Sequence record: NC_061448.1
Reading direction: 5' to 3' (one strand)
Length of the DNA stretch: 64,000 nucleotides
Positions 22,844 through 43,688 of this stretch are shown one piece after another. A program made the translations under genes and the position numbers. The notes beneath the pieces are model-generated. The model saw only the letters and a list, made by a program, of their open reading frames with translations, ran no database searches and was not told where the DNA came from. Each line of letters opens with the position of its first letter. The first letter of the stretch is position 1.

Positions 22844-23266
22844 TTATTGGCCCTTCATTGCAAACGTAATAGATTGTTTGTCTTCGAGCTTAGGACAGCG
22901 CCATGTGACTACGCACACGTAGGTCTGTTCGAATTGATCGCTCGCTGTACACGCTGTTTGCACGTTCGTTACGTCTTGCGTCAGACCGTTGTTAACGTCT
23001 TCAAGGGCGAGGCGCATGTACGTTGCAATCCAGTCAGCGGTAGTCTGGTCAAACGGTTCAAATAGATATTGATATACGTCTGCACCGAAGTTCTCGCGCC
23101 ACTTACGTGACTTCTTGCGAGTACCGATTACCATCAGAATCTTCTGGACGATGCTGTCCATGTTCTGCACGTTATCACGCGGTTCGAGTTGAATCCACGC
23201 GTTAATATCACAATAGATGCGCTCACTAATGGGCACGTCTATCAGTCGAATCCCGATTCCTGCCAT
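22844..23266 (-). CDS. Baseplate wedge / sheath initiator, gp25-like (140 aa)
   Basis: SIVQKILMVIGT....RKWRENFGADVYQYLFEPFD is a typical GPW/gp25 pattern. Confidence 0.85.
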   Translation of the reverse strand: MAGIGIRLIDVPISERIYCDINAWIQLEPRDNVQNMDSIVQKILMVIGTRKKSRKWRENFGADVYQYLFEPFDQTTADWIATYMRLALEDVNNGLTQDVTNVQTACTASDQFEQTYVCVVTWRCPKLEDKQSITFAMKGQ

Positions 23267-23556
23267 TAGCCAAATCTCACGTTAGAACTTCCGTTCGATG
23301 CAGTATCACCGCAACTGTTTGCATCACCTGCGCGTTGAGCAGGCTTGCCATTGACACGCACACTTGAGCTTGAAGTAGCAACACCTGTATGAGGCGGCTT
23401 CTTGGGTTTCCAGTGTGGTCGATACTTGTCGCCAGCGCGAACACTTCCTTTGCCATTCACGAGCACATTAGACGAGGCTTGTGCCGGAACAACAGGGAAG
23501 TAACCACTGTGACCAGTAGACAGGTCAGTGCCTAAACGAATAGCTTTCTGTCCCAT
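23266..23556 (-). CDS. PAAR-repeat spike tip protein (gp5.4-like, 96 aa; start revised to MGQK)
   Basis: AIRLGTD.STGH, NVLVNGKGSVRAGD, VRVNGKPAQRAGD..SCGD; AGAGGAG RBS. Confidence 0.9.
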   Translation of the reverse strand: MGQKAIRLGTDLSTGHSGYFPVVPAQASSNVLVNGKGSVRAGDKYRPHWKPKKPPHTGVATSSSSVRVNGKPAQRAGDANSCGDTASNGSSNVRFG

Positions 23557-23578
23557 GTTATTCTCCTCTGTTAGGCAC

Positions 23579-23586
23579 AAATTAGC
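23579..23586 (-). promoter_or_regulatory. Candidate late promoter motif GCTAATTT
   Basis: Between a terminator and the PAAR start (23 nt upstream). Confidence 0.65.
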
Positions 23587-23598
23587 TTGTTACGCAGT

Positions 23599-23636
23599 AG
23601 AAACGGAAACGGGCGACCCGAAGGCCACCCGTTTCC
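23599..23636 (-). terminator. Intrinsic terminator with C(UUCG)G loop
   Basis: Minus strand GGAAACGGG-UGGC-CUUCGG-GUCG-CCCGUUUCC then GUUUCU. Confidence 0.7.
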
Positions 23637-23663
23637 TATGCTTGGATTTTGTCGCTTACTCCC

Positions 23664-23822
23664 TCACACCCGAAGCGAGTGCCCGTCAGCCTTCGCTGTT
23701 GAGCCGGAGTGAATGACCGAGAGTGAAGCCGCATTCCACGGCAACTGAAAGTGACTCTCGGACCATGATAGCAAGTGACCAAGCATCACGATTGCTATCA
23801 GCGACACATAGAACAAAAGCAT
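23664..23822 (-). CDS. Unannotated 52-aa small membrane peptide MLLFYVSLIAIVMLGHLLSWSESHFQLPWNAASLSVIHSGSTAKADGHSLRV
   Basis: AAGGAG 5 nt before the ATG, hydrophobic N-terminal segment of about 19 aa, terminator follows; below the 60-aa ORF-track cutoff. Confidence 0.55.
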   Translation of the reverse strand: MLLFYVSLIAIVMLGHLLSWSESHFQLPWNAASLSVIHSGSTAKADGHSLRV

Positions 23823-24895
23823 GTTTGCTCCTTGTGTCTCTACTGTAAGTAAAACATTTGCAAATGTCGATCAAGTTACTTCAAGTTGCCCTTCGCCCGA
23901 CTTCACTAGGGTTTCAACTCTCTTTCTCTCTTTACCGCCTGGGTTGCGGTCGAACCGCACACAAGAGCAACGCTGCAACGATACGTGGGCGGGAAAACAC
24001 GTATCGCATTCACATCACTCCAGCGAAGGAGGTGGCCCATCGGTGATCTGCGGTGGTTGATACACTCTTTAACAATCGCTCTTGTTGTGCATTAGATCGT
24101 GGTAGGAACGCGATTGACCGCTAACAAGTCCTATACGATATTTCACTACCCGGAAAAGTGGGTTTTGCTATGGCAGCACGTCAACGGCAGCATGGCGCGG
24201 ACACACTCCATTGAACATTGTTAAGGGCAATGCTCAACAGGCTGTGAACAGCTTTGACCAAATGCAGAGTCGCTCGTCGCCCAACATCACTTGAGTATCT
24301 CGTCTGCATTCTTTTACTCCCTGAATACCGTGAAAAGGCACGGCACCCATGAGGGTCTGCGGATGTTTATCACATTAAGACTCTTGCAGTTCAATCCTGT
24401 ACGCAGTGTGTTGAGTCGTCCGCTGGATGACACACTACATACCCTCACCGTGTTGTACATCGGTAGGAAAGAGCTGGTGGAAAGTTGTCATGAAGACTGC
24501 GCGCCTGGAGGCTTGCCACTCTTCCCAATGCACACTAGTGCCAGCTAATGTACATCAGGCAGCGTAGGCTGCGATATTGCTATCCCTGAAAGATTGGTCA
24601 CAGCGTTGAGACTTCGCTCCACCAATCTACGTGCCTAGAGGCAATTGCCGTGCGTATGTCTGAAAAGAATGTAAAACACTGGGCCTTGTGAGCGTCAGCA
24701 GCAGAGCAACGGTCTATCACGTGGGTGCCGGGGTTGTCCTCACGATTACAGAGCATAAGCTCAAACCGGCTGGAGGCTCACATGCCGCCAAGAAATACAG
24801 CGCGTGAGTTTGATGGACCAGCAAGATGCCACCCGCGAAGAAAGCATCTTACCGCAACAGTTAGATATTACTATCTGCAATTTTTATTTACAGAT
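23823..24895. ncRNA. Candidate large structured non-coding RNA or very long structured leader (about 1.07 kb)
   Basis: No credible ORF of 60 aa or more in an otherwise wall-to-wall coding window; more than a dozen hairpins plus nested long-range helices; strand evidence is mixed. Confidence 0.5.
24181..24309 (-). CDS. Possible 42-aa small ORF MQTRYSSDVGRRATLHLVKAVHSLLSIALNNVQWSVSAPCCR
   Basis: GGGAG 7 nt before the ATG; the ATG lies in an 8-bp helix; may be fortuitous within the structured RNA. Confidence 0.25.
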   Translation of the reverse strand: MQTRYSSDVGRRATLHLVKAVHSLLSIALNNVQWSVSAPCCR

Positions 24896-26659
24896 TTAAA
24901 ACGCTTTACGTTCAACATTTGAATATAAAGTTTCATACGGCTCAGAGTACAGTTCAGGACCGCGTTGAGCGCGTACAGTCACGTAACCAGTGTGACGGTT
25001 GAACGCAGTGATTTCGACTGTAGGCTGTTTAGGCTTGAGGGTCGCATAAATCGGAGCGTTAAGCGTTGGTTCGTCTGTCTGAATCTTATTTACAGATTGC
25101 AGCGCAGCACCAGACAGCGTTGGCAGCTTGAATCGCAGTTCAGCACGTTTCTGACCGAACGCAGCGCGAATCATACCGTTCTCTAACTGCACACCGTTCT
25201 GCTTGAGATACGCAGCGATGCGACGGCCGATACCAGTAAGCTGATCGCGAGTACGAGGGTCGAACGTACCTTCGAAGCTGATTGCTTCTGCTGGTTGACG
25301 CACAGACAGATGCAGGCCGGTATTGAAGTAGCCTTCGGTCAATAGACGCAGCACTTCTTTAACGACCTCTTTCGTGTTCTGACCGATAGCAGCAACGCGC
25401 AGTTCAGGCACGTCTACTTTCACAGGGTCACGCAGTTCAGTCTGGTTGTCCATGTAGCCGAGAGACACATGCTTCGCGTTGGTGTACGTATGCTGCAACA
25501 CACCAGTAGCGCGAATCAATACAGAGCCGCTCTTAGCGAGGTCATACAGTTCATCGCTGGTGGTTGTGCTGAACAGGTAGTAGTCTGTAGGCACTGCCAT
25601 GCGATTGACAGCTTCGACCGCTTTCGTCTGAACTTCTTTCACAGTCTTACCGAAGACAACACGACTACGGTTAGGCTGAGAAGCAGATACAGGGAAGAAC
25701 GCACCGTAGACAGCCTGCACGTTTTTCTTAATAGGCTGCTCAGAAGGAACCTTCTTGCCGCCCGCCAGTGGAGGCAGCTTAACGCCCACCAGCTTGCCTT
25801 TAACGATGTGCTTGTTCTCTTTGACAGGCTTGAGCGAGTCAACGAGTTTAGCCAGCGACGCACCATCAAGAATCTTCTCAAGCGGAACAACGAGGTTCTG
25901 CGGCAGATAGTGTTTCTTGCGATACGTATAGATGACGGTATCTTTCTTGATCTGCAAAGGCGTTGCCATATTGCGACCAACTACACCGACAGGCTGGAAC
26001 GTGTTTGCTTTGTCATCAGCGATTGAACCAAACTGTTTAGTGAACTCAGTCTGACCAATGATGTTAGCAACACGCAGATGACCACGAACGATAAACACAA
26101 TCTTCGGTTCATCTTTCAGGCGCAGCTCGTAACGGTCACGGTTCAGATAAACCATGCTGTACTTGTCGCCCTTCTCCAGCTCAAGGTCATACTCGTCGTT
26201 AGCATCATCGACAACGACTTTCTTACCCTGATATGTAACGTAAGTGCGAGCACCAGCAGACTCGGACGCAATCTCCATAGCCTTGCCAGTGTTAGACAGT
26301 GACGCTGCGAAGTCACGCACGGCTGGCATCAGATCGAATGAAGACGACACAGCATACGGTTCGCGCTTATCGCCCAGATGCAGATGCACAGCACTGGTGC
26401 TGGACATGAAGACGGTAGTACCTACATCTTCGTGCTTGCCAGCAAAGTTCATGCCGCTGATACGTTCGATGATGTTGGCATTCAGTGATTCGAAGCGAAC
26501 ATCGCTACCAGCAGCGAAGTCAAAGATTTCACCGTGACGCCAAGCATAGGCCACGTTGTTCGAACTAAGTCCGACAAACGCATCACCAATCTGACTGACG
26601 GTTAACGGCATGATACTCAAATCACGAATGATCGAGGACTGCTTTTTAATGAGGTTCAT
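24896..26659 (-). CDS. Hypothetical protein (587 aa), probable head-internal protein
   Basis: Long ORF; internal IASESA motif followed by a domain shared with three other proteins in the window. Confidence 0.7.
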   Translation of the reverse strand: MNLIKKQSSIIRDLSIMPLTVSQIGDAFVGLSSNNVAYAWRHGEIFDFAAGSDVRFESLNANIIERISGMNFAGKHEDVGTTVFMSSTSAVHLHLGDKREPYAVSSSFDLMPAVRDFAASLSNTGKAMEIASESAGARTYVTYQGKKVVVDDANDEYDLELEKGDKYSMVYLNRDRYELRLKDEPKIVFIVRGHLRVANIIGQTEFTKQFGSIADDKANTFQPVGVVGRNMATPLQIKKDTVIYTYRKKHYLPQNLVVPLEKILDGASLAKLVDSLKPVKENKHIVKGKLVGVKLPPLAGGKKVPSEQPIKKNVQAVYGAFFPVSASQPNRSRVVFGKTVKEVQTKAVEAVNRMAVPTDYYLFSTTTSDELYDLAKSGSVLIRATGVLQHTYTNAKHVSLGYMDNQTELRDPVKVDVPELRVAAIGQNTKEVVKEVLRLLTEGYFNTGLHLSVRQPAEAISFEGTFDPRTRDQLTGIGRRIAAYLKQNGVQLENGMIRAAFGQKRAELRFKLPTLSGAALQSVNKIQTDEPTLNAPIYATLKPKQPTVEITAFNRHTGYVTVRAQRGPELYSEPYETLYSNVERKAF

Positions 26660-42185: not shown

Positions 42186-42530
42186 TCAATAGCAAACCAG
42201 ATTAACTCGCTGATCCACGTCACTTACCAGAACGGATTGTGCCATCTTGCCTGTCAGGGTAAACTGCCCTTCGATAACCATTTGACCACCAGCGAACTGG
42301 AGAATGATTGGCTCTGCGGTATCAATGTACAGCAGCCCTTTAATCTCAGGCAGTGCATAGCCTTTAGGACCGACGATGATACTCTGCATCTGATACTCAC
42401 CGTCAAGGGGAATACCAACAGCGTGTGATTGTCGTTTGAGAATAGAGTTCTGGTTAGAAGTGACAGCGCGTACACGACTATCAATGACCAGAGTACGGTC
42501 GAGCTTACGATACTTCTCGCGTGTGTACAT
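42186..42530 (-). CDS. Hypothetical protein (114 aa)
   Basis: TAATG coupling with the upstream gene. Confidence 0.6.
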   Translation of the reverse strand: MYTREKYRKLDRTLVIDSRVRAVTSNQNSILKRQSHAVGIPLDGEYQMQSIIVGPKGYALPEIKGLLYIDTAEPIILQFAGGQMVIEGQFTLTGKMAQSVLVSDVDQRVNLVCY

Positions 42531-43219
42531 TAGTCTACTTCCTCCTCGTCTTGTTCAGCGGCGGCAGAGGCGCGTGGACCTAAGTCCATGTCGATTTCAA
42601 CGTTCTCGGTGATTTCACCGTAGTTGTTAATCTTAGCCTGCTCCATGTTGAAACCAATCTTCGAATGAATCGTGATTGGAATCTCCAGTTCGAAACTACC
42701 CGGCGTACTGCCGTCATCGAGGTCATCAATGTTTGGCATAGGCAGGGAGTCATCGAGTTTGACACGCGCAGTCCACTTAGCTGTAGGCATCTCAATAGAG
42801 AAGCTCATAAGGTCAGTGAGTCCTGCAATCATCGCTTGCTGTATGAATAACAGCGCTTGGTCGATGTTCATAAACTTAACGAACAACGAACCCGTAAGAG
42901 TGACAGGGAAGTAGTAGTTCGTCACGACGATAGCGTTCGTGTCGTCTTTGCCTAACGCCCAGCCACTACCATGACGTGCGATGTTCTTTACGTTGACAGA
43001 CTCGTCACGGTTGAATGCGATGTTAGGCAGTTTGAACCAACCGTACGGATAGTCAGTGCTTTGATTGTTCGTTGCACGAATACCCTGCTTAGGGTTGTTA
43101 TGCACAGACCAAACAAAACGCTTTAACCCGAATCCCTGACGGAACTGGCGTTGAAAGCCAAAGATAGTTGCTCGCAGCGAGGTACTGCTACTGAGCATAC
43201 CTGCAATGTTTGCACTCAT
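42530..43219 (-). CDS. Putative tail completion / neck protein (229 aa; start revised to MSANIAG)
   Basis: GGAG RBS before ATG 43219; the longer GTG start lies inside a terminator; position between head and sheath genes. Confidence 0.55.
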   Translation of the reverse strand: MSANIAGMLSSSTSLRATIFGFQRQFRQGFGLKRFVWSVHNNPKQGIRATNNQSTDYPYGWFKLPNIAFNRDESVNVKNIARHGSGWALGKDDTNAIVVTNYYFPVTLTGSLFVKFMNIDQALLFIQQAMIAGLTDLMSFSIEMPTAKWTARVKLDDSLPMPNIDDLDDGSTPGSFELEIPITIHSKIGFNMEQAKINNYGEITENVEIDMDLGPRASAAAEQDEEEVD

Positions 43220-43238
43220 TTGCGGTGCTCCAGATACG

Positions 43239-43267
43239 AAAAAGGGCAGCCTATTGGCCACCCTTTT
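43239..43267 (-). terminator. Intrinsic terminator ending the capsid operon
   Basis: Minus strand GGGUGGCC-AAUA-GGCUGCCC-UUUUU. Confidence 0.8.
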
Positions 43268-43286: not shown

Positions 43287-43688
43287 TTAGTCGTCGAGTC
43301 GTAAACGAATCAATGTAGAAGGGGCAGATGATTCGGATTCAACTGAATCGTCTTCATCATTAAGCTCGTCTTCCAATTCGTCTTCGTCTTCAACTTCCTC
43401 GTCGGAGTTGAGACTAATAACTTCGTCGTCATACAACGACTGTTCTTCCTCGGCATTAAGCTCTAAAGCAGCAGACAACGCGGCGACGGATTCAGCCATA
43501 CCGGACGCGCTACTCACAGAGTTTACCAAGCAAGAAGCCTGGAAGTTATCAGCGAGTTCGCATTCGAGAAAGTCCTCAGTGTCTGGTGCAACAGCCGCTT
43601 GAGCAAGCAAGCGAGCAGCATCAGTCCACTGTCCGTCACGCGCTGCGACGATTGCCAGTGCAGCTAAGGAACCAGATAAAGTCTTCAT
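43287..43688 (-). CDS. Small acidic head-associated protein (133 aa)
   Basis: Follows MCP; E/D-rich tail ending VESESSAP. Confidence 0.65.
   Translation of the reverse strand: MKTLSGSLAALAIVAARDGQWTDAARLLAQAAVAPDTEDFLECELADNFQASCLVNSVSSASGMAESVAALSAALELNAEEEQSLYDDEVISLNSDEEVEDEDELEDELNDEDDSVESESSAPSTLIRLRLDD

Follow-up and report, generated by a model that had tools for sequence, protein, structure and literature searches.

What does a jumbo phage keep in a 1339-nucleotide (nt) gap that has no long open reading frame (ORF)? The gap lies at positions 23557-24895 of a 64,000-nt stretch of sequence record NC_061448.1 (the whole stretch is called the window here), which corresponds to Erwinia phage pEa_SNUABM_1 (genus Alexandravirus) with 100% identity, and it is flanked by a PAAR gene and a gene for a 587-amino-acid (aa) protein. 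Our comparative data indicated that the interval is a ~1 kb noncoding RNA followed by a small gene and a terminator, rather than 1.3 kb of pure noncoding RNA. Positions 23869-24863 are a noncoding, multi-domain, heavily base-paired RNA that is absent from Rfam (domains D1-D7), and the last ~190 nt are a structured cistron for a 47-53-aa peptide (domain D8), so the interval is not pure noncoding RNA. A preliminary description of the window, made from the letters alone, had proposed a possibly new large ornate RNA without a known family and had suggested folding-energy comparison with dinucleotide shuffles, an Rfam search, and inspection of the syntenic interval in relatives; conservation, covariation, folding energy, and the absence of any Rfam match all bore the proposal out. 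Its view that the gap holds no credible gene stood for long ORFs throughout the gap, but a conserved 52-aa ORF on the minus strand had been overlooked.

A structured RNA on the minus strand

The minus strand of the gap folded with a minimum free energy (MFE) of -486 kcal/mol, compared with -435 +/- 10 kcal/mol in dinucleotide shuffles (z -5.0); the plus strand had a z-score of -2.5, and a segment of the 587-aa gene matched in length had one of 0.0. Consensus folding of 21 unique sequences (alignment A1) with RNAalifold yielded 347 consensus pairs, 94% of them canonical and 142 changed on both sides, whereas sliding the partners by 1-3 columns as a control left 35-43% canonical and 28-53 two-sided pairs. 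With a second alignment of 24 sequences, 350 pairs were obtained (93.5% canonical), 161 of which carried two-sided changes, against 38 two-sided pairs in a coding control from the same phages. Three domains were then re-aligned with covariance models and compared with 500 shuffles each: D4 (24254-24359; 92.2% of cells paired, 19/24 pairs compensatory, score 0.378 versus a shuffled mean of 0.148), D8 (23647-23809; 96.6%, 23/41, 0.362 versus 0.156), and the D2 core (24626-24778; 97.5%, 20/36, 0.394 versus 0.161). The observed score was reached by 0/500 shuffles in each case, and slid controls scored 0.03-0.09 (0.04-0.05 for the D2 core). Model-fitted alignments lean to structure, but the scores exceed those of the controls by wide margins, and the raw MAFFT alignment clearly shows the compensatory changes as well. 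A non-circular test used the MFE structure of a single sequence, in which two-sided changes were canonical in 60% of cases versus 43% in coding sequence; this signal is diluted by wrong pairs, and the consensus helices with their shuffle and slide controls were therefore relied on.

The RNA is a minus-strand RNA, in the sense of the flanking genes. Among the consensus pairs on this strand, G-U pairs outnumbered A-C combinations by 917 to 121, and the excess held for each helix, including those at 24146-24435, where the preliminary description had seen a preference for the plus strand. The plus-strand consensus fold had fewer compensatory pairs and many more A-C mismatches. Because wobble asymmetry, folding energy, and covariation all favor the minus strand, only one strand appears to be involved, and the overlapping sense/antisense pair offered earlier as an alternative lost its footing.

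A coding signature was absent from the ~1-kb part. Substitutions showed no 3-nt periodicity over most of the interval (max-to-mean ratio, 1.02-1.17); the 3'-most segment gave 1.32, and a value of about 2 would be expected for coding sequence. The Fourier spectrum had no remarkable power at one-third, and a same-phase scan, used instead of a stop-to-stop frame scan that proved too lenient to inform, found no conserved sense ORF in 24863-23839 (minus strand).

The gap was found by blastn in 46 phage records, with identity from 100% down to about 67%, in three genera (Alexandravirus, Sasquatchvirus [Y3], and Snuvirus [SNUABM_7]) and in metagenome contigs. Its length was 1267-1456 nt in every fetched phage relative and 1085-1456 nt across every relative examined, metagenome contigs included. 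Further lineages came from IMG/VR, JGI metagenomes, and a scan of GTDB genomes (L114, the partial L034, and L115). Relative to pEa_SNUABM_1, the identity of the gap in increasingly distant phages was 0.92, 0.91, 0.87, 0.83, 0.72, and 0.61, compared with 0.85, 0.71, 0.59, 0.63, 0.61, and 0.55 at 4-fold degenerate sites of the adjacent gene, where the lowest value was 0.51. Since the gap exceeds these sites in identity, the comparison argues that it is under purifying selection and is not a decaying pseudogene. A pattern scan of IMG/VR matched 77 stretches, among which nhmmer passed the known phage clade alone, and E. coli genomes and plasmids showed no similarity to the element.

The coordinates of the element and its surroundings are collected in Table 1. 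The helices of D4-D7 carry 2-13 compensatory pairs each (2-8 each in D7). D1 consists of variable hairpins and D3 of one hairpin, and D2 has the most conserved junctions and a 5-base-pair (bp) helix with triple covariation (C-G, U-A, and A-U). Two domains, D4 and D7, contain copies of one hairpin module that share a common ~25-nt core between covarying stems; the covariance model of D4 matched D7 at 23876-23975 in the window (E 1e-3) as well as in relatives, where E values reached 4e-6. The natural variant L115 has a deletion of ~260 nt corresponding to D3-D4 and keeps all else, which argues for a modular fold. No supported pairing was found in the linker between D7 and D8, and no covariation-supported helix joined D1-D7 to D8 in the RNAalifold consensus of 24 sequences.

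Nearly all of the inverted repeats listed in the preliminary description reappeared as consensus helices with compensatory changes (the UUCG-loop terminator at 23605-23636, together with 23717/23754, 23766/23792, 23945/23954, 23979/23998, 24211-24237, 24261/24303, 24328/24339, 24415/24425, and 24591/24621). In the nested domain, relatives likewise showed compensatory changes in the inner GCCGG/CCGGC and GAGC/GCTC helices, and the outer GTGAGC/GCTCAC helix was not kept there. The hairpin at 24823/24844 covaried by eye in alignment A1; RNAalifold made no call for it. What had been read as a hairpin at 24873-24895 turned out to be an invariant sequence motif and not a covarying helix.

As a separate observation, the AGGAG-type ribosome-binding sites of the phage have complements in two conserved C/U-rich runs, at 24026-24032 and 24772-24776 (minus strand). 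The run at 24026-24032 is exposed (predicted unpaired) in D7. This D7 run is lost in Sasquatchvirus, and no covarying partner was found. Pairing of the D7 run with the ribosome-binding site of the peptide was considered and showed no covariation.

Table 1. Features of the gap and its flanks in the window, listed from the 5' to the 3' side of the minus-strand element
Feature	Position	Strand	Description
587-aa gene	24896-26659	minus	5' neighbor of the gap; function unassigned; stop codon 24896-24898
5' motif	24864-24896	minus	33 nt, A/T-rich; starts at the last base of the stop codon of the 587-aa gene
Structured RNA D1-D7	23869-24863	minus	~30 helices, several long-range closing helices, many invariant junction nucleotides
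D2	24443-24776	minus	Most conserved core; closing helix, 5-bp helix, long bipartite stem
D4	24256-24357	minus	Contains module copy 1
Hairpin module, copy 1	24260-24311	minus	Within D4
D7	23869-24048	minus	Contains module copy 2
Hairpin module, copy 2	23883-23920	minus	Within D7
Variable linker	23839-23868	minus	Low conservation, rich in clade-specific insertions and deletions
D8	23650-23838	minus	Tightly folded 3' domain holding the small ORF; start-site hairpin, closing helix, three hairpins
Small ORF	23664-23822	minus	ATG to TGA; 52 aa in the window, 47-53 aa elsewhere
Intrinsic terminator	23595-23636	minus	14-bp G+C-rich stem (23605-23636), 4-nt loop, U-rich tail; called by terminator scan
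Spacer	23557-23594	minus	Holds the PAAR ribosome-binding site; outside the RNA proper; near-invariant across all sequences
PAAR gene	23266-23556	minus	3' neighbor of the gap

The small ORF and the ends of the unit

Across the family, no sense frame other than the small ORF remains open in register in all full-length sequences. Its frame had 0 in-frame stops in 21 sequences, compared with 77 and 31 in the other two frames, its insertions and deletions were multiples of three, and an AGGAG-type ribosome-binding site preceded the ATG in most lineages. The two halves of the peptide differ in character: the N-terminal half has a coding signature, and the tail shows no protein-level constraint. The first ~22 codons specify a hydrophobic helix of ~20 residues (N-terminal Kyte-Doolittle mean, 2.2-2.7), with variability by codon position of 0.26, 0.10, and 0.28. 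In the poorly conserved tail the corresponding values were 0.30, 0.37, and 0.37, and the changes followed the RNA pairing; in Snuvirus the 3' end of the ORF is read in a different register. No family in Pfam, PHROG, PADLOC, or NCBIfam matched the peptide, and only three close homologues were found among 5.8 billion proteins. The ORF is already annotated as a small coding sequence (CDS) in some relatives.

Translation of the peptide looks gated in the predicted folds, because a stable hairpin pairs early codons with the ribosome-binding site or with the start codons themselves. This was seen in six lineages (z -1.8 to -3.9), in most of which the AUG stands in the hairpin loop. The closing helix of D8 joins the 5' part of the cistron to sequence just past the stop codon. 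A possible pseudoknot would form between one hairpin loop of D8 and a complementary invariant run lying directly 3' of the domain; because neither the loop nor the tail run varies, covariation lends it no support.

At the 5' end, the A/T-rich motif was identical or nearly so in 24/24 sequences, while the rest of the gap falls to ~60% identity, and the full motif occurs once in the window. Its probable role is that of a phage-specific promoter or start region. A general promoter was rejected for the window, where the motif is rare. Pairing between its two ends lacked covariation and is disrupted in the divergent contig L034. A non-canonical promoter would be in keeping with the sigma-like factor of its own that this group of phages encodes (PMC7412058). 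Two partial copies of the motif were seen elsewhere: a 12-nt exact copy of the core at 25086-25097 (minus strand), inside the 587-aa gene and ~190 nt upstream, and a 12-of-16 copy at 23843-23858 (plus strand), just upstream of the small ORF and confined to the pEa_SNUABM_1-like clade.

At the 3' end, the stem of the terminator showed compensatory changes, and its loop changes, between clades. A near-twin of this terminator is present at 43225-43267 (minus strand), between the ORFs at 43287-43688 and 42530-43261, and the phage thus appears to reuse one terminator type.

Distant relatives and possible explanations

Homologues of the 587-aa protein with 42-52% identity are encoded by phages of Yoloswagvirus, Rivsvirus, and Salmondvirus, and in these three distant genera the core of the 5' motif follows the homologue. 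In two of the three it is preceded by a terminator-like hairpin with a U-run. In L116 and L117, bulges in the stems kept the terminator scan from calling anything ahead of the motif; folding gave stable hairpins with U-runs after them. An unannotated leader of 600-1000 nt follows the motif, and that of JA29 is strongly structured (z -5.65). The hairpin module was detected once or twice in the leaders of Yoloswag, SNUABM_5, and JA29, and the D2-core model matched JA29 at the expected place (E 0.005). Several small protein genes stand between the leader and the small-ORF domain, which the D8 model recognized in Rivsvirus, Yoloswagvirus, and Salmondvirus (E 2e-12, 1e-9, and 5e-7, respectively); two of these three genomes list it as a small CDS. 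By these matches, a unit of promoter-like motif, module-bearing leader, putatively gated small ORF, and terminator is conserved across six genera, and in the three genera nearest the window the alignments suggest that the leader has become a 1-kb, tightly selected RNA.

Our leading, still tentative explanation is an autonomous, stable structured RNA whose duplicated modules would dock two copies of one partner and which would be co-transcribed with a gated membrane peptide. To our knowledge, the complexity of ~30 helices with many invariant junction bases is found only in ribozymes and in ribonucleoprotein (RNP) or RNA-only scaffolds; an autonomous RNA is favored because of such complexity, because no supported helix is shared with D8, because other genes lie between the two parts in distant genera, and because the natural variant L115 retains the remainder of the RNA without two of its domains. 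The unit would be transcribed from its own phage-specific promoter, as suggested by the position of the motif after terminator-like hairpins (in two genera), the 3' terminator, and the sigma-like factor. The large RNA would accumulate in a stable and compact form, acting alone as an RNA or RNP scaffold and not as a message. The two paralogous hairpin modules would be its working surfaces; docking of two copies, or a dimer, of one partner would be expected because the modules present the same sequence twice. The peptide would remain untranslated until its own start-site hairpin is opened, and it may be a partner of the RNA at the membrane.

Several observations weigh against this explanation. 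A sigma-70 scan made no call at the 5' motif, and the motif is not a recurrent promoter in the 64-kb window; we infer the promoter, the transcript ends, and the stability of the RNA from sequence. The fixed order of large RNA, small ORF, and terminator would suit a cis-acting leader equally well, and the peptide tail is not basic and gives no pointer to RNA binding. The Yoloswag leader folds no better than its shuffles (z -1.0). Unlike D8, the sequence of D1-D7 is barely detectable in the three distant genera, and therefore the small-ORF domain could be the real functional core.

The main rival to an autonomous RNA, possible though doubtful in our judgment, is a giant cis-acting leader, in which the ~1-kb RNA would be the 5' untranslated region of the peptide message and would sense a signal through its repeated modules (a protein, a metabolite, temperature, or processing), controlling whether the start-site hairpin opens or how stable the message is. 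Leader, small ORF, and terminator do always come in this order as one apparent promoter-to-terminator unit in six genera, a conserved hairpin hides the ribosome-binding site together with the start codon, and the tandem module copies resemble tandem sensor domains, so that the arrangement recalls long structured leaders and tandem riboswitches located 5' of an ORF with an occluded start site. However, D1-D7 has no supported pairing to the start-site hairpin, other protein genes intervene in distant genera, and the size and the ~30 helices are far beyond any known bacterial or phage cis-regulator, with no match to a known aptamer family. A scan for mutually exclusive pairings, in the form of alternative covarying helices, gave only short and weak candidates.

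It is improbable, in our estimation, that the hydrophobic peptide is the product of a type-I-toxin-like or holin-like module, with the RNA structure silencing it and prolonging its message. Messages of the hok/sok type encode small hydrophobic peptides of ~50 aa and have a hidden ribosome-binding site, a 5'-3' closing interaction, and a strong terminator; D8, the part conserved across all six genera, resembles them in its 47-53-aa ORF with an N-terminal hydrophobic helix, in the start site occluded by the fold of the message, in the helix that closes the compact cistron from its 5' part to beyond the stop codon, and in the strong terminator. Against this, no toxin, holin, or other family matches the peptide, no lysis genes are adjacent, the phage context is lytic, and ~1 kb of strongly selected upstream structure, which makes the element several-fold larger than any such message, is left unexplained. 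Nor was there evidence of a structured antisense partner: the plus-strand RNA, the candidate antisense antitoxin, gave no structural signal, although an unstructured antisense transcript would escape such a signal. Quite improbable is an attenuator or insulator for the baseplate operon, in which the RNA, the translated small ORF, and the terminator would set read-through into the PAAR and baseplate genes. Its appeal is that the short ORF ends 28 nt before an intrinsic terminator directly upstream of PAAR and that the unit sits at the border of nucleotide-metabolism and baseplate genes; yet no covarying anti-terminator pairing was found, the terminator stem is fully conserved as a stable hairpin, the spacer after it is conserved and has its own ribosome-binding site, and an ornate structure of one kilobase would not be needed. 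Overlapping structured RNAs, one per strand, are very improbable. The plus strand does fold somewhat better than its shuffles, which holds for any reverse complement of a structured RNA, and the other point in favor, a plus-strand sequence at 23843-23858 that nearly copies the 5' motif, is limited to one clade; the wobble asymmetry of every helix and the poorer plus-strand fold described above speak against the pair. It is likewise very improbable that the interval is not an RNA element at all and consists of ordinary small genes, a decaying pseudogene, or a DNA site (an origin or packaging signal). Annotators did place various small ORFs here in some relatives, but these vary in place and strand, only the 52-aa one is conserved, and codon periodicity is absent; selection is much stronger than at neutral sites, and strand-asymmetric wobble pairing points to single-stranded RNA and not to duplex DNA.

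Known RNA families and neighboring genes

Rfam 15 was searched at gathering and permissive thresholds. At the gathering score, no model matched in the 64-kb window, including those of GOLLD, ROOL, OLE, and HEARO as well as group I and II introns, RNase P, transfer-messenger RNA (tmRNA), and 6S. Only chance-level matches far below the cut-offs were obtained in 23200-25300 (E 1.5-3.9), and none at E<=1 in five relatives. The element is not described in the searchable literature on jumbo phages, these phage names, or large ornate RNAs, and a 2026 jumbo-phage review does not mention it. We rate it as a new class among the large ornate structured RNAs, unusual in that a small-ORF domain is fused to it.

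GOLLD and ROOL often adjoin transfer RNA (tRNA) genes in phage or prophage DNA. The RNA of the window is like them in being very large and phage-borne, with dozens of helices and conserved junctions, and in its modular build of a variable and a conserved part. It differs in lacking both a match to their Rfam models and nearby tRNA genes (ARAGORN found no tRNA or tmRNA genes in the 64-kb window), in its carriers, which are jumbo phages of Enterobacterales, and in its embedded small ORF and internal duplicated module. GOLLD and ROOL are large ornate RNAs often found on phages and prophages and form RNA-only multimeric cages (PMC12286853).

Another comparison is with OLE, an RNA of about 600 nt from Bacillota that is immediately followed by the membrane-protein gene oapA. 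The product, OapA, binds OLE and recruits it to the membrane; it is predicted to have four membrane helices and has a basic cluster on the cytoplasmic side (PMC12265935). The arrangement here is similar, with a large ornate RNA followed by a same-orientation gene, in this case an ORF with one hydrophobic helix. Unlike OapA, the peptide has a single helix, no basic cluster, and no detectable homology, and unlike OLE, whose own Rfam model fails here, the RNA is separated from the peptide gene by other genes in distant genera. We do not assign the system to OLE/OapA because neither the RNA nor the peptide is related. A new virus-encoded RNP machine can be imagined, membrane-associated or catalytic and active during infection, in which the RNA would pair through its two modules with the co-transcribed peptide or another phage protein. 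We consider this unlikely; if true, a large RNA system resembling OLE/OapA or a ribozyme would for the first time be shown in a lytic jumbo phage.

Very large folded noncoding RNAs are rare; we know of only a handful of classes beyond rRNA, introns, and RNase P, most of them with unsolved functions. The element would add a class whose comparative support is unusually clean, as compensatory changes were seen in ~30 helices and in at least 12 lineages. Its carriers are cultivable phages of laboratory-tractable hosts, which makes transcript mapping, probing, and structure determination feasible. The invariant motif, the duplicated module, the natural domain-deletion variant, and the occluded membrane-peptide cistron offer handles on function. 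The annotation of dozens of deposited genomes is also corrected, as the region is blank there or filled with inconsistent small ORFs.

The genes around the gap are all on the minus strand. Downstream of PAAR are gp25-like and baseplate-wedge genes, and upstream of the 587-aa gene are genes for a thymidylate kinase and a nudix hydrolase. The 587-aa protein itself matched only one PHROG without an assigned function and, at residues 139-201, a KMPT-N domain; no solved structural relative was found. The deletion variant L115 (JAVWLC010000001.1) is a 34.7-kb contig labeled as a metagenome-assembled genome (MAG) of Raoultibacter sp. and syntenic with these phages. It carries a 587-aa homologue (74% identity), the RNA, and PAAR in the phage order, and is most likely a jumbo-phage contig that was binned into a bacterial MAG.

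In the deposited records of relatives, the gap is blank or annotated with small ORFs whose place and strand vary by record. Deposited ORFs antisense to or inside the RNA include 1298-1774 in L009 and 1308-1775 in L019 (both plus strand), 2373-2522 in L002, 1589-1732 in L004, and 1033-1194 in L012. Such ORFs reach 158 aa and are not shared between relatives; those within or antisense to the structured RNA are, judging from the comparison, probably spurious calls. The spacer between the terminator and PAAR has received an extra ORF of ~40 aa in four lineages. The window is without this ORF, which was located at 1557-1670 in L003, 255-375 in L007 and L018, 251-375 in L008, about 3826-3950 in L114, and about 6790-6916 in L116.

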